DNA of 64,000 nucleotides from Bispira polyomma (taxonomy: Eukaryota), in the NCBI GenBank assembly GCA_965649765.1, contig OZ287753.1, positions 65,348,001 through 65,412,000 on the forward strand, in the 5' to 3' direction. The notes below the pieces were generated by a model. It saw only the letters and a list, made by a program, of their open reading frames with translations, had not been told where the DNA came from and did no database searches. Positions 11,279-53,275 of this stretch are shown here, piece after piece. A program made the translations under genes and the position numbers. Numbering within the stretch: the first letter of the stretch is position 1; each line of letters begins with the position of its first letter.

Positions 11279-11512
11279 CCATTCAGCACAATGGAAAAAT
11301 ATTTGTTTGCAGAACAGAGTGCAGAACTTTTTGGAGATCAACCATTAATCCACAAGCTGACACAGGAAAATGACCCAGTAAATATTAAAAGATTAGGAAG
11401 AATGATCAAAGGATTCGAAAAGTCTGTGTGGAGAAAAGAGGTTGAACAGATGCTGTACACCAGACTGTTTGAAAAATTTCAGCAGAATCCACAAATAATT
11501 ACAACAGGCTAA
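11279..11512 (+). pseudogene. NADAR (YbiA-like) domain fragment
   Basis: PFSTMEKYLFAEQSAELFGD...DPVNIKRLGRMIKGFEKSVW...LFEKFQQNP matches the central NADAR pattern (F.s.E.Y...A.LFGD....P...K.LGR.v..F....W.......KF.QN). Upstream stop codon and no C-terminal part. Confidence 0.8.
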
Positions 11513-13462
11513 TAACTGATGCCAAAAAGCAACATTACGACTCCATCATCCCTGAAAATCAGGATAATCCCAAAAGGTTATGGGCCTCCATAAACAAAAT
11601 TCTACATCGAACATCAGAGAAAGTTCTCCCCATAAACCACTGCCTTACCTTTTTAGCTGAAAAATTTGGAAAATTTTTTATAGAAAAAATCAGCAACATT
11701 CGTGACGCCTTCCTAACGATACATCACTTCAATCCTCCAGCCCCAGGATATAAGGTTTGTAACCTGTTTCATTTTAGTACACTGTCAGAGCCTGAAGTTC
11801 TGAAACTCATCAAATCCTCTACTATTAAATCTTGTGAATTAGATCCCATCCCAGCAGTTATTCTAAGTCAATGTCTTGACATTCTTGTCACACCCATAAC
11901 AAATATATTAAACTTTTCTCTTCGGGATGGTGTTTTTCCCACCTGTTTCAAGACGGCAAATGTAACTCCCTTGATTAAAAACAAGGGCTTGATAAAAACC
12001 AGCTCAAAAACTACAGACCTGTGGCAAACCTCAGCTTCGTCTCAAAAGTTATCGAGAAACCTGTAGCTAAACAAATTTCTGACCACCTTAATAGACAAAA
12101 CATTGAAAATCGCCACCAGTGTGCTTATAGAAAATTTCGCTCTACAGAAAGTGCCCTTTTTTCCATCAGCAATGATATCAATCTTGCACTGGACCGCAAT
12201 GACACAGTGGATCTCTCAGCTGCATTTGACACTATTGATCATGTCCTGCTCTGCGAAACTCTCAAGCAGTGGTTCGGTATAAATAGCAGTGTCCTTAAAT
12301 GGATCAGATCCTACCTTACTCTTAGGGCACAAAGAATTAAAGTAGATGATCACTTGTCATCTTCCATAAAGCTACCATATGGATTACCGCAGGGATCCGT
12401 CCTTGGCCCTCTACTTTTCACCCTTTATACACATCCTCTCAGCACTGTCATCAATAAACACAATATAAAACACCACATGTATGCAGATGACACTCAAGTC
12501 TATCTCTCTCAATCCACAAAATGCAAATACTAACATAGACCTACTTGCAGACTGTCTTCCCTGATGTCCAGGCGTGGATGAACTACTCCAAACTAAAGCT
12601 TAACCCTGACAAAACAGAATTCATCCTCATAAGAAACAAGAAAAACAGTGAACTCCTAAAATCTTTGTTTCCCATCTCCCTGCTGGGAAAAGACATACGA
12701 CCTTCCGAAAATGCTAAAACCTGGGTGTCACTTTTGATTCAGCTTTTTCGTTCGATACTCATATTGCCAACATCTGTCGCTCTTGCTATTACCACATACG
12801 CGACATCAAAAGAATCGGAAACCACTTGTCCATGGAAACAGCGATAACTGTGGCAAATGCCCTTGTGAGTAGCCGCCTCGACTACTGCAATTCTCTCTTG
12901 TACGGAGCAAACAAGTCACACATTAAAAAGCTCCAGTCCATCCAAAACTACCTATGTAGGGTAATTTTTCGCCTGGGTTGTCGCACAGATGTCACTCCTT
13001 ACCTCAAAAAATTACACTGGCTGCCCATTAAATCTCGAATTTTGTTTAAGATTCACGTTACCACTTTTAAGGCTGTAGTCACTCAACAGCCACCCTACCT
13101 TGCCTCCCTTCTTTCTTTCAGTAACTGCAAGAGAGGCAACAGACTCTCCGTCACTTCGGTCAGACCAATCAGAAAGGCAAGATTCAGAGCGTTCTCCACT
13201 GCAACTCCACAGTTATGGAACAGCCTCCCAGTTGACCTCAGATTAGTTGACACACTTATCGGTTTTAGGAAAAAGCTTAAAACCTATCTTTTTAATCTTG
13301 CCTACCCACCTTAGCTTTCCTCGTGCACGCTCCCACTTTCTTCCTTACGACTTTGCAATTTTCATTGACTTAATGATTGGACTAATGATTCTGCTGTTGC
13401 GCTTTAGAAGATGCCTAGCATCAATAAAGCAGGTTAAAAATCTATAATAATAATAATAATAA
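11513..13462 (+). mobile_element. 5'-truncated L2/CR1-clade LINE (RT and C-terminal region) with frameshifts
   Basis: DLSAAFDTIDH, GLPQGSVLGPLLF, MYADDTQVY, LKLNPDKTE, SRLDYCNSLL, LHWLP, FRKKLKTYLF; (taa)n tail at about 13445-13460. Confidence 0.95.
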
Positions 13463-26349: not shown

Positions 26350-27030
26350 TTTATTCTGGTGTAAATTCTACTATATCATGATTGCTCAAACATCTATTAT
26401 TCAGGTGTAAATTTTACCATTTCAGGGTTTGTCACACCTTTTTGATTTTCGTGTCAATTCTACTATCCTACAGTTTTTCCCACATCAATTGTGTACGCAG
26501 ATGTAAATTCTACTATCTCATGATTTATCACACATTAATCATTTCGGTGTAAATTCTACTATATCATAGTTTCTCACACATCAATTATTCAAGTGTGGAT
26601 TCTGCTATCTCAGGGTTTCTCACACACCAATAATTCGAGTGTAAATTCTACTATCTCAGGGTTTCCTACACATCAATTATTCAAGTGTAAATTCCACTAT
26701 CTTAGGGTTACTCCCACATTAATTATTCAAGGGGTAAATTCTTAGGTTTCTCGCACGTCCAGTGACCTAGTACAGGTGTATAAAAGAGGCTGTACTGTTT
26801 TAACTATCAGGTATAAGTCAGCGATTCTCTGCCTGATGACCTAGAGGTCACAGATTATTCATTCAGGTGTAAATTCTACGATCTCAGGGTTTGCCATACC
26901 TTTTTGATTTACATTCAAAGGGTACTATCTCAGGGTTTCTCACCCATCAATCAGTTAGTTATAAATTCTACTATCTAAGGGTTTCTCACAGCTGTTTTAT
27001 TTACGTGTAAGTACTACAACTCATGCTTTC
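26350..27030 (+). repeat. Degenerate ~50-bp tandem repeat
   Basis: Recurrent gtgtaaattctactatctcagggtttctcacacatcaatt unit; a second TATAAAAG lies within it at 26779-26786. Confidence 0.75.
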
Positions 27031-27271
27031 CCATGTCTTCTTTTCTAAATGGTATGTGACAGAAGTTTCATATTCTATTTCTAGGGCCGTACAGTTAAAA
27101 GTTTTGGCTTCATATTCGCTGGCCTCTTACCAATGTGAATTAATTAATCAATGTAAATCCTGTTTGTTCCTTTATGCAGTAAGTTTGTGGTTGACAGTCC
27201 TTTAGCACTAGTTTTTCCCACCATTAAATCTGGCCTGTCACCATTAAATCTGTCATATTTTCAGTGAGACA

Positions 27272-27587
27272 ATGAAAACCTTCCACAAGCTGATCATTGG
27301 TCTGGTAATCCTCACTGTTCTATGGCTCACACTGGCCAGCGCAACATCAGAACCGAAAACTCACTCCGGATCCAAATCTGATTCAAAGAGTGGAACGAAA
27401 TCTCATTCAAAAAGTGAAACCAATTCCGATTCAAAAAGTGGAACCAAATCTTCAAAAAGTGGAACCAAATCTTCAAAAAGTGGAACCAAATCTCATTCTC
27501 ATTCTAAATCTGACACAAAAAGTGGAACCAATTCTACTTCATCATCTGATTCCAATTCTCATTCAAAATCTGGATCATCATCCGGAG
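27272..27587 (+). CDS. Gene A coding exon 1: signal peptide plus Ser/Lys/Thr-rich block
   Basis: Acceptor ttttcag| at 27264, ATG 27272, MKTFHKLIIGLVILTVLWLTLASA, donor g|gtgagt in phase 1. Confidence 0.9.
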
Positions 27588-28636
27588 GTGAGTCAAGTAA
27601 AGTCTTAAACTGTCTTGTAAAAATCCTGCATATGGTCATGTTTTTGTGTCTAACTTTTAATTGAGTATATCAGAAGTTATACGTAAACGTTTGTGTAATC
27701 TAGTATGAATTGTTTCCAGATGCTATTTTTACTGTGCCATCTGTACCACTTAGTAGTTTCTGTACTTTCACATTACGATTGCAATCCAGTACAAATTTTA
27801 ATACTCTATCTTTTTGTAGTCAAGCTTTGAAAATGTTTGAGCTTTCTACAGACCAATAACTAATGCACACAAAGAAGCTGCATGTTGTGCCACTGCACAA
27901 AATATATAGATAATATGGTTTGTTACGTATATGCTTATAATTTGTGTGCTTATAATTTGTTTGAGTACTAACATTGACTTCTATATAAGTTTGATTAGAT
28001 TAAATTACTTAAAAATGAATTATATAAATCTATGTTAAGGTGGTGTATTGTTTTACAAAAATGGGACAATGAATCAACAGAACATATTTTAACCAACATA
28101 TTGATTCATAGAGTAGGGTAGCCATATGAAGTCATATGAGAATATAAAGTTTTGTTTAAGTACACACTACTGTAAGTAATCTAGAATAAACAATTAATAA
28201 TCATATGCTTCTAAAATTGCGTAAAATAATATTAATAATATGTCACCTATTTTTTTTATCCAAGGCTAACAATTTCATAATACAGTATAGAGGATCAAAA
28301 TACATTTCTAATGTTGCAACATAATAAACCTCATTGAAGAAACTAGGTAAATCTTGACTTTAAGTTTGTTACTTTGTTTCTAAAAATTCTTGCACATTAC
28401 AGTGCAATACAGTGAATCAAAAACGTTTCTGTTCAGCTAATAACAATACTAATAATACCAGATAAATATACAACCTGCCGCAGCCAGCGTGTTTAAAACA
28501 TAGATCCATATCTGTAATTCAAAATCCAGATCAATGTCTGGAAACAACCAGGAAGTAATTCAGGTACAGTGTTATATCCTGTGTAAGTGTCAACATCCCC
28601 TTGCATCATTGCATTATCATTCAACTCTCCTTGCAG

Positions 28637-29093
28637 GTCCAGACTGTTTTGGCTGTGTACCCGGGAGTGTATGCGATGTTCCACCTTGCGGTTTTGATGG
28701 TTTTGAAAACTGCACTTGTCCTTGTGATGGTGACGATGAAGGAATTCCCTACAAATGTGATGACTATGATTTAGAATGTGATGACGATGATGATGATGAT
28801 GACTCTGAATCAAGCTCCAGCAATAGTTCTGGATCAGGCTCCAGTAAAAGTTCAAAATCAGGCTCCAAAAAAAGTTCAAAATCAGGCTCCAAAAAAAGTA
28901 AGAAATCAAGCTCCAGTCATGGTACAAAATCAGGCTCCAGCAAAAGTACGAAATCTGGCTCCAGCAAAAGTACGAAATCTGGCTCCAGCAAAAGTACAAA
29001 ATCAGGCTCAAAATCTGCTTCAACGAAGTCTGATCATAACAAGAAGAGAAGGAGAAGGAGATCCCACAAAATTGTGAAAAGGTGGATTGAAGG
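28637..29093 (+). CDS. Gene A coding exon 2: Cys/Asp module, poly-Asp, KSGSSK repeats, KKRRRRR and KR sites
   Basis: cttgcag| acceptor in phase 1; gg|gtatgt donor in phase 2; open frame. Confidence 0.9.
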
Positions 29094-29536
29094 GTATGTT
29101 TTAATCCAGTTAGTTCTACTTTGATGGGATGAACAAATATTGATAGTTTAATTCTTTAATTATTTCCTCCAAATGTTTATGCCAAAAGATGATTGTCTCA
29201 CTTTCATAAGCTTCAACAAAACAACACAAAATCTTTGACTGTCATATAACGTGTACAGTAGTACAGATGTCCCGTTTTATACAATGATTGTACAACACAG
29301 CAACTATTGTACATCTTGGTATGTCAATGTCTCTGATTTGCAAAGTTATGATGAATTGGATCATTATGTGTAATTATCAGATTATGTGTAATTATAGTAG
29401 TTAAATGAAATGATGTCCTAGGACTATTCCGGCCATTTGATTATAAAATAAAGCGTGCTTTAAAGTTTTTCAAAAATGTCTTTCATATTGAAAAATAATG
29501 CCTAAGGATTCAAAAATTTTGTTTCACAATTTACAG

Positions 29537-29799
29537 AGAGGGTGAGTCCAACACGAATGATTCAGAAAGTGGCTCCAAAAGTGGTTCGAAGAGTGGCTCG
29601 AAGAGTGGCTCGAAGAGTGGCTCGAAGAGTGGCTCAAAGAGTGGCTCGAAGAGTGGCTCGAAGAGTGGCTCAAAGAGTCACTCGAAGAGTGGCACAAAAA
29701 GTCACTCGAAGAGTGGCACAAAGAGTCATTCGAAGAGTGGCTCTAAAAGTGGCCACAAGAAGAGTTCTTGCAGAAAGCGTCATATTGGAGGGCCTAAAG
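29537..29799 (+). CDS. Gene A coding exon 3: 16 S-x-x-K tetrapeptides, including (SGSK)9
   Basis: ttacag| acceptor in phase 2; 12-bp repeat read as SGSK/SHSK/SGTK; g|gtaatt donor in phase 1. Confidence 0.9.
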
Positions 29800-30846
29800 G
29801 TAATTGTGACTTAATTGGCTCTACAAATTAGAGATGAGACTTTAAATTATAGCAAATATTTTATCTTTATCCTGTAAACTCTTGAGAGCATCTAAATAGG
29901 ATCCAAATGTTACTGGGACCAGAATATATTATATTTACCAGTAATACAATATTTGTATAAAAGTATATGTTGTGTATCTAATCTAATCTAGTCGTACTTT
30001 TACAATGCTTAATCTTTGTACAACAAATTCTAAGGCGCAACAAACCCAAAACATTAATCAAAAATCAAAAATAGTGGGCGGATGGAAGTCATAACCAGGA
30101 AGACTACCCTGAATGGTTGCGACGGCTAAGGTGAAAAACCTGTTCAAAAAGGTAGGCATTTAGCTTACTCCTGAAAGAGGATAAAGTTTGAGCCAGGCGA
30201 ACATGATCAGATAGGCTGTTCCAAATGAGGGGGCCATCATGACTTGTATGTGCTTGTCTTGTGGTGATAGGGCTTCACAATCAACAGAGTCCATAGCTTT
30301 AGACACGGGCGAGACAATGATTCTTGTACTAAAATTACACTTTCTTAATTAAAAGTGTGTGTTTATATTTACACGGTATAGAGCCATTAGGTGCTACAAT
30401 AAAGAACATTTTAAAACATCTATAAGGGAATATTATTTTGAAAGTATAATTTGAGTCGTTTTAAAGTTGGGCTATAGTATAACTGACACCAAAACTAATC
30501 CACACTGATAATACTAGCAATAACCTGTGTCAGGCCAAATATACTGTGATGTAATATTTTACAAGGAGATAACTGCAGTTGGTTTGATAGTGATTCATAA
30601 TGCAGATTTATTCTGCTAAAAACCTATAATGTTCTACAAAATCATGTAATTGCACTATTCTAAACCAGTAACACCGAATCCTTAACTTTTGGAACTTTGA
30701 AACAAACAAATTACGGTGTTTTCGTAAGACTTTTTTTCTAGATCAGTGAACTGCCTGCTGTGATATGACACATGCTGAAAGCGACGTTAAACCCTAAACT
30801 ATCACACACTTCTGATGACATTGTGTTTATTACTTGTATACTCCAG

Positions 30847-30938
30847 GTCACAGGCCAGTCTGCTGGGCTTTTAGTTTTGCAGTAAACATCACAGAGGGAT
30901 ACAAAGATGGCCACAGACAGGAGTGCTTACGTGGACAG
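30847..30938 (+). CDS. Gene A coding exon 4 (GHRPVCWAFSF...ECLRGQ)
   Basis: ctccag| in phase 1, cag|gtaaag in phase 0, 92 nt, open. Confidence 0.8.
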
Positions 30939-30989
30939 GTAAAGATTGCACATTGTGTGTATGACTATACACATATGCTAAGTACTTAG

Positions 30990-31048
30990 AATAGAACCGG
31001 GGACCTTCTGATCATCAGATCAACACCCTAACCACTAGACCACGGGGG
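30990..31048 (-). mobile_element. tRNA-like SINE head fragment in an intron
   Basis: Minus strand reads gtggtctagtggttagggtg...cccggttctattc (A box and degenerate B box). Confidence 0.5.
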
Positions 31049-31236
31049 CTATTTAACACTGCCTGAAGGGGAGATGTCATAATATCTCAATATATTTTAG
31101 TGTACCTTAAATATTGCCATTTAGTGATCTAAATGACATGTTAAAAATTGGGTAGGGGTTTATTTTGGAGGGCTGTATTACAGTAAACATGGTATACACC
31201 ATTAGTTTGAGTTTTGTGAGATGTTCATTTTCATAG

Positions 31237-31360
31237 GATAAATGCATCATAGAAATAGATGTGGATGGGCTCTACCACAGGCGGTGTGGGACGTTGGTGG
31301 AATGTTTTCAACTACAATACAACCCCAGGGCATCTGAGAAATGTGTGGACAATGGCTGCT
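31237..31360 (+). CDS. Gene A coding exon 5 (DKCIIEIDVDGLYHRRCGTLVECFQLQYNPRASEKCVDNGC)
   Basis: ttttcatag| in phase 0, t|gtaagt in phase 1, 124 nt; the same donor position is kept in the inverted paralog. Confidence 0.85.
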
Positions 31361-33114
31361 GTAAGTAGAACAGGGCTTTTGTACATGTGTATTAGAATGT
31401 ATATTAGGAGCTTTATTGAAGTGAATGGTCTTATATATGAACTTATATTTGAGTTGTGTATAAATTTAAGCACGAGTTTATTTCGATAATACCAGCCCCT
31501 ATGTAGTCAGTAACAAATAGGGGCTAAGTGAAAACATTTACTACAAAGTCTTGTACAGCTAAGACAAAGGGTGAGTTCACCCTTATTTGAATACAGCCTC
31601 TGTGGGGAGCTGTTGAGGGAGTGGCAGTAGACGGGATGGGTGATCACAAAAACTCCTAGGCAAGTAAAAAGAAACTATTGATTAAAACTTTGTTTAACTA
31701 TTTTAATTTGTATAATTATAACACGGATGAGAGTTATATATACTAAAGCGTAAATAGTCTATCAAGCTTTTTAAAAACTCCTGTTTGAACTTATACACAA
31801 ACTTCTGCTTTTTTTAAATAGCTTTTAATTATGATGTGTGTTAGGAAAAATGTTCGGATCATTAAATATGTAAAAACATGACCTAAAAATGTTACCCCCC
31901 TCATAAATAAAAAATTCTTTAAGTTATGCGATGCAATATGTTACCAAATCATTTCACATCAATCATAAAGCATACAATTTGTTCAAACTTTAATTGGTGG
32001 GGATTTATGTTTGCTACACATATTGACATCTCTGATTGAGTGATCACTACAATACATCATCATTCATACCATGATGCAAAGGCATTTAAAGAAAATAGAA
32101 TAGTTTAATACAGGTTTTTAAATTAAACTTTTAACAAGTGAAAAAAAGTTAACAAAGAAGTGTATTTTTTTTGCTTGGAAATATCCCAAAATATATAAGT
32201 AAATGAATCATTAGGATTATAAGTACTGTGGGTAACCAACTTTAAAATTAGGTAATCAACTTTAATTGTACTTTACTTGACACAAAGGCACTTATCACTC
32301 TACCCTTAAAGTGTTTTTATACATTTTTACTCTAAAGGTTGTAGTATATTTAATACATGTTATAGTGTGTTTTTGAATATTCATATCATAATTATAAAGC
32401 TGAGTTTTGGAAGCTGTTTGATTTTATTTGACTCATATTTGTCTTTTATCATAATTGGTAAATTTTAAGAATAAATCATTGCAGACAACGCAAAATAATA
32501 ATACAGAATATCAGATTTATTTTTAGACTACACCATAGAAGCATTACAGTTTAAATGTTTTATAAATATAAAAAATATTGTCCAATTATATTTGTTCAAA
32601 CAAGATGCCTGATTACAATAGATAGATAGGCACAACATATTTGCTTGCTGTTAACTCCTGTGTTTGGTGCATACCTTGAAATGGGGGGGGGGGGGGGCGG
32701 GGGGGGGGGGTTGTGGGGAGAGCTTTATTAATTAAAGGAATGTTTGAGATGACAGGGCCATGTTATAAAACTAAACTAAACTCAACTAACATGAAAGTAA
32801 AAAGTATTATTGTTGATTTGTATCCCTGGTTACAAAACTAATTGAAACTGTAATTGAGGTGGTCTCTTAAACCTGTCAATGCGGTTGTTTAGGGATGGCA
32901 TAGTTAGTCAAAGACCGGTTCCAAACATTGGTGAGTGATTGTTGGTAATAATAACAATATCACTAAGACATTGTGTTTAATATTGATATAAAACATGTTA
33001 TATCATGAGACAACCAAATAATGTGCAATCTATGTTGTCCTGTTTAAGTTATAGATGATAGGCTTGCTGCTTATGTTTTTCTAAAAGTATGTTCTTGTTT
33101 GCTATCTTTTGTAG

Positions 33115-33247
33115 CCTTGTTCAACTGCCCGGCTGTTGGCTGTACGTATCAAGAGTCTGTTGTGCCCACTTTAAGTTTTGACAGAGATGGAAACGTCTGT
33201 CGCTGTGACGGCTGGTGCTGGGAACCATACACCTGGGATGTGTACAA
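33115..33247 (+). CDS. Gene A coding exon 6 (LFNCPAVGC...CRCDGWCWEPYTWDVY)
   Basis: ttttgtag| in phase 1, aa|gtaaac in phase 2, Cys-rich open frame. Confidence 0.85.
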
Positions 33248-33544
33248 GTAAACGGACGTTTTCTTTATTTGGTTATTATGTTTGCGCATGCTCGAGGAGC
33301 AGCAGCTATCATCCTCACCTTGCAGTCTCGTGGAGAGATACTTTCCTATAATCTATGGTGCATCTAAATTCCAGTACAAACATCTACACAATTTATAACA
33401 GCTCAGGTTATGCTATAAAATACTTGCTTCTAAGGGTCATATAATATAATAATTGCAACATTTATTTTGCGCCATGTTAAATATAACATCCTGTAAGGCA
33501 CTGATATGCAAAAAAGGGAAAATCAAGGGGAAAGCAAAGGTCGT

Positions 33545-33990
33545 CACCAATAAGCATCCACTAAAGGAAGGGTGACTAAGGAGGGGGGCCGGGCCAGTAA
33601 TTTTATCCTGTGATCTGACAGTATGTGGGAGCTTGTTCCATTCAACAGGAGGTGCAATGGCAATGCAACGCCCACTAATATTTCTGTTAGGTCGGGTTGA
33701 GGAGACAAAGAGGTGGTTTCCCCGGGTAAGGCCACTAGATTTGATTTAAGTGAGGAGAGATAAAGAGGTTGGTTGAGTTTCTTTAGGTAGGGTGAGACAT
33801 GGCTAAGTTTGTTAAGCTTGTACATAATACGGCAGAGGGCATTTTATACTCTTTGGAGCCTTGTTATGTTGACCTTATTTATACCGTACAGCGAGCAGTT
33901 GCAATAGTCTAGCCAGCTGCTCACCATTGCATTAGCCACTTGAACTGCAGTTTTCAAGACTGAGGTGCCTGCGTATTTTGTGCAGATTGA
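33545..33990 (-). mobile_element. L2-clade LINE 3' fragment in an intron
   Basis: NAMVSSWLDYCN..LYG and HVSPYLKKL on the minus strand, homologous to 12826-13314. Confidence 0.75.
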
Positions 33991-34667
33991 GCAGATGGTA
34001 GGCCCAGCAGACACTGGCTTCATGACTCCTGGCTATAAAATAATTGCTTCTAAGGGTTATGCTATAAAAATGTCACTTTTGAATAAAATGTTTAGCCCTT
34101 ACCGTTCTAACATATTTACCTTATTATCTTTGGGTAACACACTATATGAAAAGTACACACGGTTGAAATATACTGTGTGTTCCCAGACTCCAAGCAAATG
34201 TCTGCACAGTTAAGTATTTGTCGTATATAATCTCTATAGCTTACGTCCAAGGTTTTTATCAAACACAGCCTGATATTGTTTTCATAGAGAAAAGGGCGCC
34301 ATCATTTTAGAAATGATATGTATTAGCTTCATGCATCGATTGGAAGCAATTGACACAGCCCAACTGTATCAGAACAATATTATTAGAGGTGCCAAGTGTG
34401 TCAGAGTGTAAAACTTCTGAGTTGTATGTGCTAGTATTCCAGTGTCTGTGGCCTAATAATGCCATGGTAACAATATACATGAGTATACAGTATGATCTGA
34501 TATGGTAAATTAAATCCTCGAAGTGCCTGCAGGTATTATCTCTTCTGTTCCATAACAAGTGTGGAAATTAGTGACTGGGTAGAATTTTTAACATATGACA
34601 CACTGGAATATATGGTGGTTATAACAATGTTTTTCTATAAAAGAGACAACTCGTGTTGTTATTGCAG

Positions 34668-34735
34668 AGCCAGATGTTGTCCAGGTGCTTGCAAGTTCTG
34701 TAGAGCCAAAGGAGATCCAACACATTGTTACCCTG
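34668..34735 (+). CDS. Gene A coding exon 7 (ARCCPGACKFCRAKGDPTHCYP)
   Basis: ttgcag| in phase 2, g|gtatgt in phase 1. Confidence 0.85.
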
Positions 34736-35290
34736 GTATGTAAAGCTATGTTCACATGTATCCTTAAGCTATACATACATCTTAACAGCAAACACCTCAA
34801 TTCAAATGCATCCTTGGAATCAAAATAACAGATTTTCAAAGGTTTCAGGAACAGTTTATGGTTTAAAAACTTTATTTACCTTTTTACTATTTTCCTTGGG
34901 ATACTTGAAGGGCGAGAATACTTTTCAATGGCGCCGCCTTCTTAAAAATAATTTGTAAGGCATTCATAGATTGGTTAAAAGCAATGAGGGGTGTCAGATT
35001 GATATTATCAGGTGGTTATCACAGGCACAGCCGCCATGTTGAGAATATGCAAGACCTTCATGGATTGGTTGAAAGCAATCAAACCGGCGAAACTGAGGGG
35101 TGTTAGTCACACTGTGTGCCGGTGTCTTTAAATAAAGGCAGTCCTTGTTTATCATTAGCTATCCTTAAGCTATGTTAACAGCAGCACTTTAAACACGATA
35201 AAAATAAGTTTATGTTATTTACATTAATTATGATATTATATTATTCACAAGTCTCGATTATTGCAAGTAATTCATTGTTTTGTTTTACAG

Positions 35291-35331
35291 AGGAGATACT
35301 CCAAGAGATAGAAGAACAAGGAGGAAACTAG
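35291..35331 (+). CDS. Gene A terminal coding exon (EEILQEIEEQGGN-stop)
   Basis: ttttacag| in phase 1, TAG at 35329-35331, AATAAA at 35421-35426. Confidence 0.8.
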
Positions 35332-35569
35332 TGAGCTGTGACTGACAGCTGTTAAATTCTCTTATCACGTAGTCATGGCATTTTGACTTAATTCTTTAAC
35401 TGTAAATTTTTGAGAAACAAAATAAATTGATAGTACCACTGTACATATACATGTGTATTATTTTAACTCAATACAAGCAGTAAAACCTACTTATAATTGG
35501 ACACCCATCTAAAAAAAAACATCCAGATTGTTCTGAATGGACAGCTATTAATGTTACTGTTCTATGATA

Positions 35570-38329: not shown

Positions 38330-39497
38330 GTTGAAGCGGACGTGCGGTCTACTTATTCAATAATTAGGAGCTACATATTTCTGCTGGCTCACGTTGTAGA
38401 TATGATTATCTAAGGTAAGTTGTCTTTTATGAAGTGATGTAGTCTCTCTCTAATCTCTATATAGACAGATAGTGGTGCAGTCTATATCTCCATCTCAACT
38501 GCTGCAGAAACAGCATCATCCAATGTTTTGGCTTTTACTTGATAGATCTTCCACTGAAGATCACTGTCATCCAACACGTTGATAAATGAGTCTGGCCCAT
38601 AACATCCTGTGTGGCTGTTGGATAGGCCAGCTGAATTAAACATTGTATACCTTTGTCTAGTTTGGGTAGACTCTGCAATCCCTTTCTTTAAAAGTTTCTT
38701 AATATCGCTCTGATTTGTCTAGTTTGGGTAGACTCTGCAATCCCTTTGTTTAAAAGTTTCTTAATATCGCTCTGACAAGTTCAGTCTGGTTTTCTGGGTT
38801 GCAACCGCGACTTAGAGCGGTCACTAATCCTTGATAATTCTGACATGTCTGTGGAGTTAAAGTCCTTATGAGCTGACAAGCTGCTCCTCTCAGACTAACA
38901 CCGAGATACTGAGCTTTTTGTCTGTCACTCCACTCGTTGAGATCCACACAGATTTTAAAATGGCTAATAAATTCTGACCAGGATCCACATACATTGAAAT
39001 GATATGGCATAAATCATGGACGTTTATTACTGGCCATAACCCCACCTGACTTCCTATTCTCCCTCTCCTGGTATCTCACCGGTTTTGAAGCACTACTTCT
39101 AAACATATTTGGCCATAAGTCGGGTTGTGGAATCTCATTCTCACCTTGTAAGTACATCAGACATTCTGGTGCTGCTTGGAGTATTTCCATTTGGCAATCA
39201 TCCCGAGTATCAATATCTATTAATGATGATCTTTAGGACTAACATCCCCAGCTGCATGCTCTTCCAAGCAAGGTGACATTTCTATGATTATGTCAAGGCA
39301 GAATTCGTACCACTGGAGCTTTAAAAAAAATAACACCAGTTGAAGCAGATAAGCGGTCTACTAATTCAATTATAAAGAGCTAGATATTTCTGCTGGCTCA
39401 CGTTGTAGCTATGACTATCTAAGTTAAGTTGTCTTTTATGAAGTGATGTAATCTCTCTCTAATCTCTATATAGACATGTAGTGGTGCAGTCTATATA
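38330..39497 (-). mobile_element. Internally deleted Ty3/gypsy LTR element (gag remnant between direct repeats)
   Basis: Direct repeats 38330-38487 and 39339-39497; tggtg PBS-like start just inside the upstream repeat on the minus strand; gag-like WSEFISHF..C..LNEWSD.QKA.YL..SLRG.A and TLDDAVSAAVEME. Confidence 0.8.
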
Positions 39498-41209
39498 CTT
39501 ATGAAATGATGTAGTCTCTCTCTGATCTCTATATAGACATATAGTGGTGCAGTCTATATACTTATGAAGTGATGTAGTCTCTCTCTAATCACTATACAGA
39601 CATAAAGTGGTGCAGTCTATATACTTATGAAATGATGTAGTCTCTCTCTGATCTCTATATAGACATATAGTGGTGCAGTCTATATACTTATGAAGTGATG
39701 TAATCTCTCTCTAATCACTATACAGACATATACTGGTGCAGTGTATATACTTATGAAGTGATGTAGTCTCTCTCTAATCTCTATATAGACATATAGTGGT
39801 GCAGTCTATATACTTATGAAGTGATGTAGTCTCTCTCTAATCACTATACAGGCATATAGTGGTGCAATGTATATACTTATGAAGTGATGTAGTCTCTCTC
39901 TAATCTCTATATAGACATATAGTGGTGCAGTCTATATACTTATGAAGTGATGTAGTCTCTCTCTAATCACTATACAGACATAAAGTGGTGCAGTCTATAT
40001 ACTTATGAAATGATGTAGTCTCTCTCTGATCTCTATATAGACATATAGTGGTGCAGTCTATATACTTATGAAGTGATGTAGTCTCTCTCTAATCACTATA
40101 CAGACATATACTGGTGCAGTGTATATACTTATGAAGTGATGTAGTCTCTCTCTAATCTCTATATAGACATATAGTGGTGCAGTCTATATACTTATGAAGT
40201 GATGTAGTCTCTCTCTAATCACTATACAGACATATAGTGGTGCAGTCTATATACTTATGAAATGATGGAGTCTCTCTCTGATCTCTATATAGACATATAG
40301 GGGTGCAGTCTATATACTTATGAAGTGATGTAGTCTCTCTCTAATAACTATACAGACATATACTGGTGCAGTCTATATACTTATGAAATGATGTAGTCTC
40401 TCTCTGATCTCTATATAGACATATAGTGGTGCAGTCTATATACTTATGAAGTGATGTAGTCTCTCTCTAATCACTATACAGACATATACTGGTGCAGTGT
40501 ATATACTTATGAAGTGATGTAGTCTCTCTCTAATCACTATACAGGCATATAGTGGTGCAGTGTATATACTTATGAAGTGATGTAGTCTCTCTCTAATCTC
40601 TATATAGACATATACTGGTGCAGTGTATATACTTATGAAGTGATGTAGTCTCTCTCTAATCACTATACAGACATAAAGTGGTGCAGTGTATATACTTATG
40701 AAATGATGTAGTCTCTCTCTGATCTCTATATAGACATATAGTGGTGCAGTCTATATACTTATGAAGTGATGTAGTCTCTCTCTAATCACTATACAGACAT
40801 ATACTGGTGCAGTGTATATACTTATGAAGTGATGTAGTCTCTCTCTAATCTCTATATAGACATATAGTGGTGCAGTGTATATACTTATGAAGTGATGTAG
40901 TCTCTCTCTAATCACTATACAGACATATAGTGGTGCAGTCTATATACTTATGAAATGATGTAGTCTCTCTCTGATCTCTATATAGACATATAGGGGTGCA
41001 GTCTATATACTTATGAAGTGATGTAGTCTCTCTCTAATCACTATACAGACATATACTGGTGCAGTGTATATACTTATGAAGTGATGTAGTCTCTCTCTAA
41101 ACTCTATACAGACATATAGTGGTGCAGTCTATATACTTATGAAGTGATGTAGTCTCTCTCTAATCACTATACAGACATATAGTGCTGCAGTCTCTATACT
41201 TATGAAGTG
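39437..41209 (+). repeat. Tandem array of 28 x 63 bp derived from the LTR
   Basis: Unit tatgaagtgatgtagtctctctctaatctctatatagacatatagtggtgcagtctatatact starts at 39437, 39500, 39563 and so on to 41201; a single unit is present in the other LTR copy. Confidence 0.97.
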
Positions 41210-44116: not shown

Positions 44117-44235
44117 ATGAAGCTTGCTAGCCAAGGAATCATTTTGCTGCTATTTATGACTGTATACGTCATATGTTCTGACGATAATAACCCACATGTT
44201 GTTGAAAGGCGTGGTTTCGGTGAGCAGAATGACAG
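44117..44235 (+). CDS. Gene B coding exon 1: signal peptide (MKLASQGIILLLFMTVYVICS-DDNNPHVVERRGFGEQND)
   Basis: ATG 44117, hydrophobic N-terminus, ag|gtaaga donor in phase 2. Too short for the ORF track. Confidence 0.75.
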
Positions 44236-44665
44236 GTAAGAGAATACTTGCCTGTGACTGTGAGGGAACAAAGGTTAAAACTTACTACACCCGTGGACAT
44301 TGATTGGAACGATTTTTTTGGTTTTTCTTAATATTTTATTATTTAGAAATATTATTTATTTTGTATTTGTACTTCATAAAATAGGTTATATGACAGCACA
44401 ATTAATAAGTAATAAAAAGGGTCTGAAGTATTTGAAGATTATTCTAGAAATTAAATAATTTCTTCAAATTTTCAAAATCGAAGTGGACATTAATTGGAAC
44501 ACTTTTTTTTTTCGTTGCTCATTTTTTACAATGCTTCTTGATATTAACCAATAAATATCAATGAAATTGTTCTAAATTATATTATTGGCTATGTAGCCCA
44601 ATTTGGTAAAAATTGTGACAGTTAATCTAAAAAAATCAGCCTGAATAAAAAAATAGGCATCCAAA

Positions 44666-44907
44666 TAGATGTGGTTACCGCGGCGATCGTCACTTAGCTG
44701 TCTTATCGCCGTGGCACGAGCCCACATAGAACTGGAGATTTCTAAAAACTTTTAAATTTTTTTTTTTAATATTTTTTTTATTTTTTTTTCAAGTGTTTTT
44801 AAGGTTTTCATTTTTTGTTTTCTGTTTTAAAAAATCTCCAGTTCTATGTGGGCTCGTGCCACGGCAATAAGACAGCTAACTGACGATCGCCGCGGTAACC
44901 ACGTCTA
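44666..44907. mobile_element. Foldback MITE
   Basis: About 80-bp near-perfect inverted arms around a T-rich spacer; 9-bp TSD gcatccaaa / gcatccata. Confidence 0.85.
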
Positions 44908-46010
44908 GCATCCATATTGTCATATTTCGGGTTAAAAATAAATGAAATTGCTATACCGTTTTTTTCTGAAATATCGCCCGGGCGATCATTGTTTTCATAA
45001 TATAATCAGACGGGCGTTAAAACAGACCCGGCGATTATTTGAGTAAGGGCGTTTATTAAAAACTATGAATTTTCATAAACAGTTTACTTACCAAAAGCTA
45101 TTCATTGATCCATTGTAGGTCTAAAATCCTTGAAATAAATATACCGGTACTGGTAAACCTAGTTTACCGTTTCACCTTTCCAGTAGACAGCAATATTTAA
45201 CTGGCAATATAAAACTCCTGTGAGTCCTGTAATATATTTAAATAATTTTCTTCTCTTTTTTTTTAATTTAGTATTTCATGTATTTGTACCAATTTTGCAT
45301 ATCATGTACTGTACAATATTGAAACAAATAAAAACATATTGAAATAAGTGAAACATTTTATTCTATTCTCAAAGTAACATGACAACAAACATTTTTTGCA
45401 CACTAGAAAGTTCTTAACTATAACATTTGAAAGTTCATTTGTAAACTGTAAATGCTAATATTTAGTGCCAATTTGTCAATGTTTGTATTCATCTGAAATT
45501 TCATCACTACAGATTTAACGACATCACACTTGTAAGTTAATTATGCTTAAATACAACAACTTGTTATTTAATAGTAATATGTCAATGTTTGTCAATGTCA
45601 ATCATCTAAAATTTCGTCACTGTCACTTTCAGAACTTTCACTGGTAACAGCATGAGTATCATCAATCTCTTATAAATTTCCATTGCATGCGACCAGCTTC
45701 CTTGATTTTTCTGCAATTTCCTCCCTATATAAATTACAAGCTATAGTTAAAGATACGGTAACTGTACTTCAGATTTTATGTCTCTTTCAACTTTTACTAA
45801 CATGACAGATAATATATTGATTGAAAGAAATCATTACTGGTATGTTTACAAAAGTGATCTTTAGTAATTTGGGTAAAGGAAACCGGTGTAGTTGGTCAAG
45901 ATTACAGTTGTGGTGATAAAAAACCTGTGTGGTGGTGAATGAATATTACAGTACCAGTATTAAATTAAAACTTTCAACAGAGTACTTAGGGAAGTATGGT
46001 ATTGGTACTT

Positions 46011-47686
46011 TTATTTGTGATAATTCCACCTGTAATTAAAGAGACATCCTTTTCCCTTCAAACATTCAATGTATTCATCTTTTGATGAATCGACCTTGTT
46101 ACTAATGGCACAAGTGAAGAAGCTTCGAATTATAAGTTCAGTGGAGAGTCTTGACCATGCAGTTTTCACCCATTGTGCTACCAGAAGCCTTGATGGAGGT
46201 TTAAGATTACCACCAACGGTTACAGGTTTGTCATCCGTCATCATCCACTCTTCACATAGTTCTCGCAAGTGTGCCTTGAAAGGTGCGTTCCGACAAACAT
46301 CTGGTGCCTATGAAAGTTAGGGTTAGGGTTAAACCTAGTGTTAGGGTTAGGGTTAACCCTAGCCCTAACCCTAACTAATTTTCAAAAGTCAATGTTTGAA
46401 GTCAACATTAAGCACTTTTTCTACACTGACACCCATCACCAGATATTGACAGCTACTTTATTACACTCTATCTTGTTGTATCAGAATATAGATTCTAAGG
46501 CACAACATTTAACCAATGTTAGTGACGTAAGGTAAGATTATAACATACCTGTATAATGCCAGTACATCCTCCAGGAATAATTGCCATATCAACCTTCATC
46601 TTCTTGGCTTCACACTTTACAGCCTGTGAAATATAGCATCTGTAGCTGTCCCATACCAATAGTCTTTTGTTGAAAGTCATTCTGCCAAGGATAGAATTGA
46701 GATATTGAAGAGTGAGGTTCTCATTCATCCAACCATTTTCACTCATAACTGGTACAATGCCAGGAAGCATGGCAACCTCTCGATCCATCCTCTTGCCTTT
46801 AAAAATGATCATTGGAGGGAGCTTTGTCCCATTTGCTTTTGCTGTAAGGCACACAGTGATTCTTGACTTTTCATGACCTGTTGTACGTATTGGGATGCTT
46901 TTTTCACCTATTGCAGATATAGTGGTACTTCCTGGCATATCAAGCCATACTGCTGTTTCATCCATGGCATACATGTCTGCCATGCCATAATAATTCTTTA
47001 TTCTGAGGCTACGTATGTAAAATATGAAGTTTTTAAGCTTTGACACATACTGTGCTGGTATCTTTTGGCCCTGTGTTGTCTTGCGGCGTAGTGTTAGATT
47101 ATGCCTTCTGAAAAAGCGATTAAGCCATCCATTACTTGCAACAAAGTTGCTGTCTCCTCTAACTTCTACATCTGAGCGAATCTGGGCATCCTGCCTGCTT
47201 AGCTCTCTTGCTTTGTTCCTTACCAGTTTCCTATTAACTCTATTCCTTCTTTCTCTCATCTCAGATATCCAATCAACAAGTTTTTCTTCCAAAGTTCTGC
47301 TCATTGGTTTCCTGCCTGTACCATCAAGCTTCATTCGTTTTTCACCACCAGATCTTTGTAGGTATTCTTTTAACTGATCCTTTTGCTTTACCCATTCTCT
47401 TGTTCTTTTTGGAGCTACACCATAATTTCTTGCAGCAGCCTCTTTACTAGCCGTCTCCGAAAAAACCACTGCTTCCAACTTAAAAGGTATTGTATAGGAT
47501 TTGTGAGTTTCTTTTCTTTCTGTAGCACTGAGCAATATCCCTATCTTTTTCTTCAATAGTTTTCTTGCGATATGTTCTAGTGCCGGTAACTTCAGCATCG
47601 GTTTCCTTGCCAGTTTCTTCACTAGAACCATCAGCATACTCCAAAGTATCGTTAATGTCTGTATTTGGGTTACAATTTGAAGCCAT
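46011..47686 (-). pseudogene. pogo-like DDE_1 transposase (N-terminal HTH, CENP-B-type HTH, DDD), with a frameshift near 47510 and an intron at about 46308-46549
   Basis: KSYTIPFKLEAV, FVASNGWLNRF, MDET, LLVWDSY, IPGGCTGIIQ|APDV..NAPFK joined across gtatgt...tttcatag. Confidence 0.9.
46316..46376. repeat. Short head-to-head TTAGGG/CCCTAA telomere-like repeats
   Basis: gttagggttagggttaaacctagtgttagggttagggttaaccctagccctaaccctaac. Confidence 0.8.
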
Positions 47687-48994
47687 TTCTTTGGTTAAAT
47701 TACCGGCTGATAAATATTTCTGTCTGCTGGTACAGGAAGACAGTTCGAGATTTACCGGTAAAAAAATCCTTAACACATTACAAAGACACTACCCAAATGT
47801 ACCATATATTCCGATAAATATCAGATGTTAATTTGTTTATGAATCAAAAGATACTGAGTATCCTTAAGTGTCACTATTTTGATAGCTACAGTACTTGGAA
47901 CAAAATGAGGAAAGCCCAAAATGACAAAAACGATCACTGGTTACCAAGGTACCAGACGTGTAACCTTTCTTTATATCGGCGCATGTTGTGTCAACACAGC
48001 GGGAGGGGGGGCGTTAATTCGGATCCGGCGTTTAATTATCTCATTGTCCGTTTGCCCGGGCGTCAATTCGGACCCGGCGATGTTTCGGACCCGGGCGATA
48101 TTTTGGAATAAAACGGTAAAATATTTGTTATTGTTTAACAGGGACATTTATTGGACATAATTATAACGACTTGTTATAAAATATATGCCAGTGGAATTTT
48201 ATTTTAAATTTGTTTGATTTAAGCTATAACCTTGCAATTTACTGTAAAATCGTTCCAATTAATGTCCGTTCTAATCAATGTCCACGGGTGTAGACTTGCG
48301 TGGCGTATGCGTGATAAAAGGCTTTAAAGTCAAATACAGCACATAAACTGACTGTTTGAGTAAATGGCCTTGCGTTGTGTAGAAATCGATCGAACCCACA
48401 TGTTAAGCCTGGAATAAACATGTACAGCCATGCATCATGTTTTCGACGCAATGGGGTTTTTTGACGTACTGTATTTACTTTGTGCATATTTTATGATAAA
48501 TGTAATTTTTTTTAAGTACGTCGGAAACCCCGTTGACCATCATACGCATCCGTATCCGCGTCCGCAGAATCAAATTACACCTTTAGCATGGTTGTTCCAT
48601 ATTCCGGTCTACGTAACTTACAGTGCATAAACTGACTGTTTAAGTAAATGACCTTGCGTTGTGTAGAAATCGATCAAATCCACAAATTAAGCCTAAAATA
48701 GACATGTATGCATCTGCATCCACGTCTACAGAATCAAATTACACCAGTCCTGTACTTATTTTTCATCCGCATCCTTATCCGCATAGTTAAAATAATCATT
48801 GAAGGTGTACTTCTTTGTGTCATATTTTATTTTTTAACAAGCTTTCTCAGGTAGAATGTAGTTTGCTGGTACCAATATGACGTCACTAACTCCACTTCAA
48901 AATTTTAAGAAGGGGTTTGGGGGCTTTTCCCCAATCTTTTGCTAAACTACGATTTATTTCTAATATCATAAACTAGGTAGAGAATATTTAAACC

Positions 48995-49255
48995 ACGGTG
49001 GTATACCATATACAAAAATGTTCGCTTGTATTTCCAACGGCTGTATACCCAAGACAGTTTAGGTCGCTTGTGTACCCAACGGTTGTGTCCCCAAGAAAGA
49101 AACATATTCTTATGTACCCTACGATTGTGTCCCCAAGGAAGATATGTAGTCTTATGTACCCTACTGTTGCGTTCCCAAAACAGAAACATATTATGTACCC
49201 AATGGTTGTGTCCCCAAAAAAGATATGTAGTCTTATATACCCAATCGTTGTGTAA
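48995..49255 (+). repeat. Degenerate ~40-bp tandem repeat
   Basis: Recurrent atgtacccaacggttgtgtccccaag motif. Confidence 0.7.
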
Positions 49256-51024
49256 ATAACCACTTGGATCTATTAATGCTTAATTTTATCTTATTTATGT
49301 AATATTTGCGTCGAAAATGGCACTTTTAAGCTATATTTTTTCCACCATTTTAAAAAAAAAAACGTTTTATGCACATACGTAATTGGTCCGGCAAAGTGCA
49401 TTTGCTCCACTTTCTCTGTTCTCAAATTAGATTTTCAAAGGCAAAACCAAATTGTAGAATGAAGAAAGTTACAGAACAAAATTAAAAAAGTTTTAACCCT
49501 TATCGTTATGATGATTAGTTTATACTGCAGCAGTTTTTCTAAAAATAAGTGAATTTAACCAGGCTTTATGCAACTATCATATGTACAGACAGATGCCATT
49601 TATTATCAGCATTCTAATGATATATAATTTATTAAAATCCATCCATAAATGCTTTGGAACCTAATATGCAAGACACAATACCAAATATAGCTTTAAAAGG
49701 TTATTTTATTCATTGTCCGCATTGGTATCCACATCCGTAAAAAAAAAGGCTCCCATTCCTTAATTTGCGAACGCAAACACCCACATCAAAAACTGCGCCG
49801 CGTGTAGGTCTATATGTCGTAACTATTTCATTTCCATTCCTTATATTTGCGGATAAGGATGTGTAAGGTACTTTGCGTACAGGTCTTTATAACCCCTTAC
49901 AGGGTGGCTATCTTTTACACATACGCAGTGCCGCTTCCACCCTAACCGACGAAAGCAAGTAACAGCAATCCTATTTATCTGGCTTAATGGCTATGTAATT
50001 AAAAAATATATATCACCTATACTTCCACTATATTTGAGCATTTAATCAGTAATATTCTCTGTAAAAGCTTGCATTTCAAACAATTTTGGGTTCTTTCCAA
50101 ATATATGGTACTTCCCAAATATATGGATAGTAGTGACGATTCGACGAACGTCTAAGCGTTTGTTGGTCTATTGACCACATAGATGACGATTGGTGAAGAT
50201 CATCAGAAAATCGATCATTACAGTCCGACTTTAACTAATAATATCCTTATTACCATATCATTTGAATTGAAATTTGTGATACCTATCACAAAGTACAGAA
50301 TAAGAGCTTTTTGGTAAAACCAAAACAAATATTTTAGAAGTATTCATATATGATACAGCCATTTGATAATTGAATACACCAGTATAAAATTTTTTTAATA
50401 AAAACTGGCTATATTGTCAACTGGCCATTTAAATATTGTGAAATGCAGCAATGACAAGCCAGTCTAAAAAGCTATTATTAAAAAGACGTCTTCGGCATTT
50501 TCTATGAATAGTTCATTTAAATATTGTTAAATGAAGCAAAATTGACCAGTATACATCTATATCAATAACATAAAGCCGCTTTTATAAGCAACTATACGAG
50601 AAATCTTCACAATTTGAGCCGTTTTTATCAAAAATGGGCTGTATTTGTCATAAAAGTCGTTTTCGTCATTCAGGAACACTGCGCAATGCCTACATTTTTA
50701 TTGTGTGACAATTTATTTATCCCATAATGTACACATCTGGTGAGTTTTATACAAACGCCTAAGGTATGTATGCAAGAGCCTACGCAAATTCAAGTTTAGT
50801 GAGTTTTTAGCCCTAAGATAGGACTGTATAATGAAAATCGCGTATCCGCACACTGACAGTCCTATCGGCTTCCACAAGAAAAATCTAAGGTTTTCAAACT
50901 TTGGCTTTAGACTCTGTATATAATAAACATTTGACTGTCCCTATGTGTCCCAAGTATTCTCTGTATATTGTATTAACAGTCAAAAACATAACTTTGAAAC
51001 CAGCCTGCACAAGGCAAATAATAT

Positions 51025-51403
51025 TAGGGGTGGGACGGGCCCTAAAAAAGCACCCCGAATAATCGCTAGCGTCTAACCGGTTCGAAACCGGGTACCCGTA
51101 AATTTAGTATGCACCAATCTCAGAAACCAGCCTAACAAAATGGCGGCTGATGTAAACAAAATCTTACAAAAAATAAAGGCAAATATCTGGGGGAATATTG
51201 GAAATTAGAAGAAAAACGTATGTTGGATGCTAAAATTTAACCAAAGTTATTGTTTTGGTGAAGTTATTTATAATTACAAGCTATAATATAAGAGTTTTAA
51301 CTTAAAACGTACACGTTTTCGAGTCCCCGAATCGCAAATTTCACTCTGGTTTCCCCCAAAATCGACCCGTAATCGGGTAACCGGTCCCCCTGTCTCACCC
51401 CTA
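51025..51403. mobile_element. Non-autonomous hAT-type element
   Basis: TIRs taggggtgggac / gtctcaccccta; perfect 8-bp TSD aataatat (51017-51024 and 51404-51411). Confidence 0.85.
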
Positions 51404-53231
51404 AATAATATCCAACTCGATTGCTGTAATTTTTACAGCTAGAAACTTTATAGCATCCATGTTTGTTTGTAGAAGTTGCTAAGCTTCAAAATCTACCAAA
51501 ATTGGGTCAAGGCTATCTTTCATTCATATAATTAATATAATCCTATGATGAATGTATTGTTCTCTCAAAAACAGAGTAAAATTGTATGAAGTATTTAAAT
51601 ACTTGTCTTACTGTTACACATCAAAAATCTATATTGGAAATGATAATAATTGGATGTCACATGTTTTTTTGTCTGTTTCTTAAATTATTTTCTTGGTAAA
51701 GAGTTTAATTAAAAAAAAGAGAGAGAGAATTCTTGTTTATTATAGTGCCACCTGCTGCATATAGATTACATTTTTACAACTGCATAACAAAATACTGCAC
51801 ACCAGCTAAACAAAACTTACAATACTGCAGGTGATTTTATTTGCCCGAAATAGTAGATAACCTTCTAAAATGCCCGAAATAGTAGATAACCTTCTAAAAT
51901 GGTAGGCTGCTCAATGCCTGTGAACACGTCTTTTGCGCAATGTTTTAAATCTGTGTAAAACACTTTGTAGTCTGTATAATGCAAGGTAGGTTGTTTACGT
52001 TCTGCATGGTAAGTTGTTTATGTTCTTCCATTAATCACCCTTGATACTCTTCTCTATTTAAACTTGTATGATGTTCCACCATATATTTCAAATTATGTAA
52101 CGTCACAATACAAGATTCGCTATACTACTGTTTTTAATGATTTTCAATTGAAATGTTTAAGTTTTAAATGCTTTGTGCAAATAAAAATGGGTTAAACGGT
52201 CACGAAAGAGCCAGTTTGAAGCCACTGTATAGGGGATATGTACAAAAATTAAAATTTCTAAACGCAGCATAATTTCTCAGAGGTGCATTTATGTGTTTAC
52301 GTTCAAAGCCCCTTAAGTATACTCCTAATACTAGGTGGCTGTATATTTAAAATTCATTGCAAAACGTAACTGCTTCCGTTGCACGGCTTTTAACGAGGCC
52401 AATAGCGTCATAATAACTATATGACACACGTCTTTACTAGGATAATGGATCACATGTTCAACCAGAACCATAGACTTTACAGGTAGGATGCACATGTAGG
52501 TGTGACCAGCCCATTAGTGACATCCTATTGGTACCAGTAAACTGCATTCTAGCCAAATATTGAATATTCTTTTTATTTTGAAGAGTTAATCTGAAATTTA
52601 TGGTTCATTTAAATCACAGAAACTTAGTATCTATCAGATAATGTAAAAAGAAAAATCGATGCATATTGTGTCACTTCCGGAAAGTGCTTTAAATCAATAT
52701 ATTGCAGTGTACAACTAAATATTTCCTAGCATAATCTTGTAGTTTTTGTGTCACATCTTGTATTTTTATAAACCTTCTCTAAATTTGTTTTATTAAAATT
52801 TCAGAAAAAAAAATTCAGTGGTAAAAAACTTATAATGTTGACCAAAATCGACCCATACTGCATGGCCCGGTGTATTTCTATTTGTCCGACAATTTTTCTG
52901 GTTAATAGAAGCAGTGATCGCAAATACTGTATACATGTATTTGATTTTTAAGTTATTTCATTTTACTCAGTGCACTGATAACAAAGTGCACTGATAACAA
53001 TTGGGCCATTGCTAAAGCCTAAACCTAGATCTATCATCTTCATATTGAACGGTTTTATACATTAAATTTTACCAATAATATTGACTAGACCATGCTTCAC
53101 ATTATTGTAAATTGACTAGTTGACACAGCTTCTGATAAAGGATGATTACCCATGTCATCAATTATTTTTCTTATTCAAGAAGGTGATCTCTTACCAAAGG
53201 ATTTATGGCACATTTATGAGACTTTTATTAT

Positions 53232-53265
<34 letters not shown>

Positions 53266-53275
53266 TGATGAAAAG

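Follow-up and report, generated by a model that had tools for sequence, protein, structure and literature searches.

Sabellid fan worms build their tubes from gland secretion mixed with particles, and the tubes of Sabella are 82 to 88% protein (PMC4375521). Polysaccharide is also present in sabellid tubes, and a literature search for the sequence of a sabellid tube protein found none. For the cement of sandcastle worms, condensation through phosphoserine-Lys pairing and Ca/Mg, with setting in seawater, has been proposed. For such polyphosphoserine glues, the responsible kinase has so far only been proposed (PMC12621633). One kinase, FAM20C, has many secreted substrates and can act by an S-x-pS or polyserine route (PMC12621633, PMC12650399). 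Here, we analyzed a 64,000-nucleotide window of the Bispira polyomma genome (assembly GCA_965649765.1, contig OZ287753.1, forward-strand positions 65,348,001 to 65,412,000) and within it a gene, here called P1 (window positions 27272 to 35331), to which we give roughly an even chance of encoding a precursor of tube cement or tube lining that is cleaved by furin and bears phosphoserine. The family to which P1 belongs provides named, testable candidates for sabellid tube proteins.

The first-pass annotation of the window had proposed a gene of eight exons joined in phase, and the proposal was borne out when splice ends, phase, and length were rechecked. Each of the eight forward-strand exons has GT-AG ends, and together they give 1,494 nucleotides that encode 497 amino acids and a stop, with no internal stop codon. 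The proposed order of modules was likewise recovered in full. Exon 1 (27272 to 27587) encodes a signal peptide (amino acids 1 to 24, to 27343), called from hydropathy, and a first Ser/Lys/Thr/His block with 34 Ser and 14 Lys in 81 amino acids; a second in-frame donor lies 9 nucleotides downstream, at the position where the tandem paralog P2 splices. Exon 2 (28637 to 29093) encodes an acidic module with nine Cys at amino acids 109 to 153 (to 28779), then eight Asp (28780 to 28803), Ser/Lys block 2 (28804 to 29040), the polybasic site KKRRRRR (29041 to 29061; amino acids 241 to 247), and a KR pair (29077 to 29082; amino acids 253 and 254). Exon 3 (29537 to 29799) encodes exactly 16 S-x-x-K tetrapeptides (29568 to 29759; 10 SGSK, 3 SHSK, 2 SGTK, and 1 SGHK) with a 12-bp period at 29568 to 29753, followed by the first Cys of the C-terminal domain (29769), an RKR triplet (29772 to 29780; amino acids 337 to 339), and a GGPK end. 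The C-terminal domain continues through exon 4 (30847 to 30938), its most conserved part, which ends in RQECLRGQ and has five matches in the genome; exon 5 (31237 to 31360); exon 6 (33115 to 33247); and exon 7 (34668 to 34735), which carries a terminal CC-x3-C-x2-C. The domain contains 18 of the 27 Cys of the protein. Exon 8 (35291 to 35331), which has a counterpart in P2, encodes a short acidic tail and the stop codon, and the putative 3′ untranslated region (35332 to 35430), with AATAAA near 35422, is also kept in P2. At the other end, a splice-acceptor-like site (27250 to 27271) lies 6 to 7 nucleotides 5′ of the ATG in a context matched in P2, from which we infer a noncoding exon upstream. 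A 46-bp array (26351 to 26742) is present just 5′ of P1, with TATAAAAG near 26779.

Searches of the genome itself indicated that P1 is one of five family members (P1 to P5), all on the same contig (C6). P2 (65,336,833 to 65,345,720, forward strand) is a tandem copy 38 kb upstream of P1 that has eight exons with the same phases and encodes 437 amino acids. P3 (7,210,891 to 7,219,332, forward strand; 435 amino acids) and P4 (7,207,187 to 7,197,825, reverse strand; 422 amino acids) are intact genes of nine exons, arranged head to head with 3.7 kb between them. P5 (about 80.084 to 80.087 Mb) was copied recently from P4, and its own 5′ part was not found within 11 kb upstream. Moreover, a decayed, inverted fragment of the family lies within the window (1985 to 3110, reverse strand), where exon 5 carries a stop and a frameshift and is accompanied by about 0.8 kb of intron 5. 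Between P1 and P2, identity was 88 to 93% across exons 4 to 6 and their flanks and about 72 to 75% across the alignable parts of introns; over exons 4 to 7, synonymous divergence (dS) was 0.242 and nonsynonymous divergence (dN) was 0.059, a ratio of 0.24. By this comparison, the Cys domain is under purifying selection. The paralogs and the dN/dS ratio together exclude a chance open reading frame or a repeat artifact as the origin of P1. Because P2 shares the eight exons and their phases, and because P3 and P4 read through in phase, we conclude that at the level of sequence P1 is confirmed as a real gene.

The four intact members share a signal peptide, a first Cys module, a Ser-rich block with a polybasic end, a second alternating-Ser block, and a C-terminal domain with 18 common Cys and the same intron phases, and the exon 3 Cys and GGPK end are conserved in the family. 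The Lys residues, however, are paralog specific: P2 has more Arg, and P3 and P4 have Ser-His-Ser-Asn/Gly repeats. P3 and P4 also carry an additional stretch of 81 amino acids after the polybasic site that contains 16 Tyr, 10 Lys, 8 Arg, and 9 Asp. The P3 exon for this stretch (C6, 7,214,560 to 7,214,949) is 96% identical to that of P4 at the DNA level, whereas identity between the P3 and P4 Cys domains is just 47 to 80%, a pattern that suggests recent gene conversion of the Tyr-rich exon. Since Lys is not conserved and RKR is no family-wide cut site, we conclude that the signature of the family is alternating Ser, Cys domains, and one convertase-type site, rather than Ser/Lys per se.

The composition of P1 is consistent with a secreted low-complexity protein. 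Ser makes up 23% and Lys 13% of the whole chain, and Ser rises to 42 to 51% inside the three blocks, which together hold 106 Ser; 79 of the block serines have Ser or Thr at the +2 position, and the longest alternation is (S-X)22. Five N-glycosylation sequons are present. Hydropathy peaked at 2.8 at the N terminus and reached 1.0 past residue 30; with no other strongly hydrophobic segment in the chain, the protein is most likely secreted in soluble form. The proteolytic processing suggested in the first-pass annotation stood in part. A mid-chain polybasic site is found in all four intact members (KKRRRRR, KRRRRRK, RRKR, and RHKR), but RKR was rejected as a conserved cut site, being missing in P3 to P5 and coming after the conserved first Cys of the C-terminal domain; among the cut sites, conservation is thus limited to the mid-chain polybasic one. 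A polybasic site, together with the isoelectric point of 10 to 11 predicted for the unmodified blocks, could also point to a precursor for mucus defense or metal handling, in which cleavage would free cationic Ser/Lys peptides with antimicrobial or antifouling activity and the Cys, His, and Asp modules would bind metal. Sabellid mucus has reportedly been studied for defensive activity. We consider such a role improbable, as the blocks are not amphipathic, their Lys content is not conserved across paralogs, and the single conserved cut site would yield two large chains. We conclude that P1 encodes a modular, Ser-rich precursor that is probably processed.

One way in which the serines of the family could be modified is by Fam20C-type kinases encoded nearby. 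A Pfam Fam20C search of the genome returned eight loci, five of them on C6, and four of the eight lie within 60 kb of P3, P4, or P5, each downstream and on the same strand: K1 (7.168 to 7.184 Mb, reverse strand) after P4, K2 (7.247 to 7.262 Mb, forward strand) and K3 (7.273 to 7.276 Mb, forward strand) after P3, and K4 (80.109 to 80.118 Mb, forward strand) after P5. An exact genome search for the DRHHYE codons found five sites, namely, K1 to K4 and a Fam20 locus on contig C9. Two exons of K1 best matched FAM20C (expect value [E] of 6.5e-10 for human FAM20C, 1e-5 for FAM20A, and 0.44 for xylosylkinase), and K1 keeps the catalytic Lys, DRHHYE, and the Glu at the position where FAM20A has Gln; K2 to K4 have the Pfam Fam20C match and the DRHHYE codons. 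A probable first exon of K1 with a type II anchor is inferred 13.9 kb past the P4 stop codon. In one exon, K2 was 39% identical to K1 and K4 was identical to it. K4 is thus read as a recent copy of K1, and the low identity between K1 and K2 indicates that the two inverted gene-plus-kinase units around P3 and P4 are old. The rough chance of one among eight kinases falling this near was 0.003, a value computed after the link was seen. Ser-rich genes arranged head to tail with expanded Fam20C genes would constitute matched enzyme-substrate pairs, and the linkage makes the question of phosphorylation directly testable. The fifth Fam20 locus on C6, at 9.98 Mb, shares its last-exon layout with the linked kinases.

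The identity of the linked kinase also bears on a proteoglycan or mucin-like core, in which Ser-Gly sites would carry glycosaminoglycan or O-glycan and the product would be hydrated mucus rather than a phosphate glue. Ser-Gly after acidic tracts is the arrangement of serglycin-type attachment sites, and in P1 Ser-Gly pairs come after the eight Asp and fill block 3, where they occur in 13 of the 16 tetrapeptides. The five N-glycosylation sequons, the lack of S-x-E, and the polysaccharide of sabellid tubes are likewise consistent with such a core. K1, however, is FAM20C-like and not xylosylkinase-like by the E values above, and a Lys-dense context is unusual for xylosylation. We therefore regard a glycosylated core as distinctly unlikely.

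The precursor of tube cement or lining would work as follows. In the Golgi, a Fam20C-type kinase would phosphorylate many of the 106 block serines, such that the net charges of +8, +17, and +13 of the unmodified blocks would shift to about −20 to −26 each at half phosphorylation; at lower occupancy the blocks would be balanced zwitterions. A furin-like convertase would cut at KKRRRRR to give an N-terminal chain of block 1, the Cys module, the eight Asp, and block 2 and a C-terminal chain of block 3 and the 18-Cys domain. The chains would condense in secretory granules by phosphoserine-Lys pairing and Ca/Mg bridging, set in seawater, and bind sediment grains and sulfated polysaccharide, with the Cys domains as folded ends for assembly or cross-linking. 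His beside phosphoserine could form histidinoalanine links, and the Tyr/Lys/Arg-rich sister proteins could supply dihydroxyphenylalanine (DOPA) chemistry by way of the many tyrosinases, for which 38 matches were found in the genome. Clustering of tyrosinases with the P1 family was dismissed, as the nearest lies about 1.8 Mb away. On contig C1 (104.69 to 105.11 Mb), six tyrosinase matches form a cluster, and a Fam20 locus lies about 0.2 Mb away from it. The cement or adhesive role offered as one option in the first-pass annotation gains from the tube-building host, from the Tyr/Lys- and His-rich modules of the paralogs, and from the linked Fam20C genes.

Several observations weigh against a phosphoserine tube precursor. 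A single origin followed by copying probably accounts for the kinase linkage, which therefore counts as one event. Neither P1 nor P2 has a neighboring kinase, and the Fam20 locus nearest to P1 is about 15 Mb away. The chief difficulty lies in the target motif: P1 and P2 contain no S-x-E, P1 contains only two S-x-D, and each of the kinase-linked paralogs P3 and P4 contains two S-x-E. With no S-x-E in P1, the S-x-pS chain lacks an obvious primer, and phosphorylation of P1 would need an S-x-pS or polyserine route or an altered kinase specificity. P1 has only nine Tyr, none of them in the Ser blocks. Finally, Cys domains of this size are absent from known cement proteins, to which the Cys and Tyr exons of the family showed no homology. 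A broader proposal, which we offer tentatively and would sooner expect to fail than to hold, is that a fan-worm tube-glue kit evolved independently of that of sandcastle worms: private, processed precursors that combine anion and cation in one chain would be encoded in units of substrate plus kinase, and the Fam20C paralogs of these units, dedicated and diverged, would be able to phosphorylate alternating Ser in a basic context without S-x-E. A zwitterionic glue made of a single chain would add a new design to underwater adhesives.

Homology searches were conducted with single exons of 30 to 80 amino acids, the word search was limited to proteins of similar length, and the databases may lack sabellid proteomes, so blank results are weak. 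Within that scope, no homologue of the P1 family was found outside this genome. Exon-by-exon Pfam scans of P1 gave no domain match, PDB sequences gave none for single exons of the family, and no homologue emerged when exon 6, the Tyr exon, and the Cys module served as word-index queries or when family exons were compared with metagenome contigs and the ESM Atlas. A profile of exon 5 compared with 1.84 billion representative proteins gave two hits, both tandem-repeat artifacts, and weak matches with E values above 0.02, among them methanol dehydrogenase, lamin, and an E1 protein of a virus, were rejected as noise. AlphaFold2 returned a mean predicted local distance difference test score (pLDDT) of 44.7 for the exon 2 Cys module, the fold of which was not predictable. 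The second half of the C-terminal domain has a Cys spacing that resembles somatomedin B, with exon 6 encoding the first half of the pattern; we treat the resemblance as a lead only. The pattern is clearest in P4, where exons 8 and 9 encode C-x-C-x3-C-x5-CC-x-D-x4-C; the spacer in P1 is 12 residues rather than the 5 to 6 of the somatomedin B pattern, and single-exon Pfam and PDB scans gave no somatomedin B match for this domain, which an intron interrupts. The 18-Cys domain may represent a fold not yet described. The absence of a named family noted at first pass was thus upheld, and the family is apparently undescribed and lineage restricted but of a known functional kind.

An anatomy that says only secreted, low complexity, Cys capped, and processed would also suit a phosphorylated or disulfide-linked structural protein elsewhere in the animal, such as in chaetae or uncini, cuticle, the radiolar skeleton, or an egg coat or spawning mucus. 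Since FAM20C has many secreted substrates, the kinase linkage would fit any phosphoprotein matrix. The exon-by-exon scans, however, indicated no chitin-binding, collagen, or ZP domain, and the mixture of Ser, His, and Tyr modules resembles underwater adhesives. We consider a structure other than the tube unlikely, though the likeliest alternative to the tube precursor.

Host biology also bears on whether P1 is a silaffin-like template for silica or calcium carbonate. The Ser/Lys blocks, acidic tract, and proteolytic sites parallel a silaffin precursor (PMC4557024), and P1 contains 10 K-x-x-K motifs. Only one sabellid, however, is said to make a calcareous tube (PMC4375521), P1 has no RXL motif, and Lys is swapped for Arg, His, or Asn in the paralogs. 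Sabellid tubes are mostly protein and sediment (PMC4375521), which lowers the mineral reading, including the mineralization role proposed at first pass, and raises the tube reading. The silaffin likeness weakened as well: RXL counts were 0, 1, and 0 in P1, P2, and P3; K-x-x-K counts were 10, 2, and 1; and in P1 K-x-x-x-K occurs 28 times. Membership of P1 among the silaffins was rejected, given no RXL and no homology in the single-exon searches; the K-x-x-K motif is neither dominant nor conserved. Precipitation of silica by a synthetic Lys-rich peptide in vitro may not reflect the native role, and we know of no biosilica in fan worms. We conclude that a mineral template is very unlikely.

The host assignment and the remainder of the window were also surveyed. 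The mitogenome (contig C75, 1 to 15503) is 38.7% GC and has a type III skew; cox1 to cox3 and nad3 share one strand, and the opposite strand carries eight protein genes. Its size, GC content, both skews, and strand layout match those of "Bispira sp. 2" (PMC13602327), a comparison of summary values rather than an alignment, and point to a sabellid host. Extracellular globin linker genes in the genome are consistent with an annelid. Within the window, a second secreted gene (44117 to 60425, forward strand) has a signal-peptide-like exon at 44117, an acidic exon of 78-bp repeats (53281 to 53670), and helical exons near 57168 and 58684; the exons tried gave no significant Pfam match. A Pogo/Tigger-type transposase reading frame with HTH_Tnp_Tc5 and DDE_1 domains lies at 46519 to 47637 (reverse strand), a remnant of a long interspersed nuclear element (LINE) reverse transcriptase (RVT_1) at 11500 to 13314, a Harbinger-type DDE_Tnp_4 remnant at 62800 to 63560, and a 63-bp tandem array of 28 copies at 39436 to 41209.

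Comparison with described systems places P1 near several of them. Like the diatom silaffins Sil1p and tpSil3 (PMC4557024), P1 has a signal peptide, an acidic part, Ser/Lys repeats, probable proteolytic maturation, and a possible zwitterion, but it differs in the lack of repeat-by-repeat release, in its large Cys domains, and in its host, in which silica formation is not known. The FAM20C substrates of vertebrates (SCPP/SIBLING proteins and phosvitin) are likewise secreted, Ser rich, and of low complexity, and some are released by proteolysis, but they are acidic and rich in S-x-E, whereas the P1 blocks are basic and contain none. To our knowledge, there is no case of such substrates clustered with their own FAM20C paralogs, and a literature search for FAM20C substrate genes so clustered found none. 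The sabellariid cement proteins Pc-1 to Pc-5, Sa-1, Sa-2, Sa-3A to Sa-3C, and Sa-5 (PMC12621633, PMC4275877) are also secreted low-complexity products of a tube-building annelid, and FAM20C has been proposed as their kinase (PMC12621633). Their Ser-rich, His-rich, and Tyr/Lys-rich chemistries are the three that the P1 family combines. Sabellariid cement, however, divides its polyanion (Pc-3, 73% Ser) and its polycations among different proteins of about 130 to 400 amino acids, for which no conserved domain is reported, whereas P1, from another worm family, has Ser and Lys in alternation along a single chain that also carries a polybasic site and two domains rich in Cys, and its 23% Ser overall with 27 Cys is not a Pc-3-like composition. 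Cys and Tyr exons gave no match to Pc-1 to Pc-5 in large protein sets, a search that covered those exons and not the low-complexity blocks. The (pSX)n motifs of caddisfly H-fibroin (PMC4929942) are alternating Ser-X in an underwater secretion, and P1 too would be Ca bridged if phosphorylated; there, X is aliphatic or Arg, n is 4 to 5, and the fibroin exceeds 300 kDa, whereas in P1 X is Lys, Gly, or His, n extends to 22, and the unrelated chain is 497 amino acids long. We conclude, by analogy, that P1 probably functions as the phosphoserine cements of sabellariids and the caddisfly (pSX)n silk do, apparently without membership in either.

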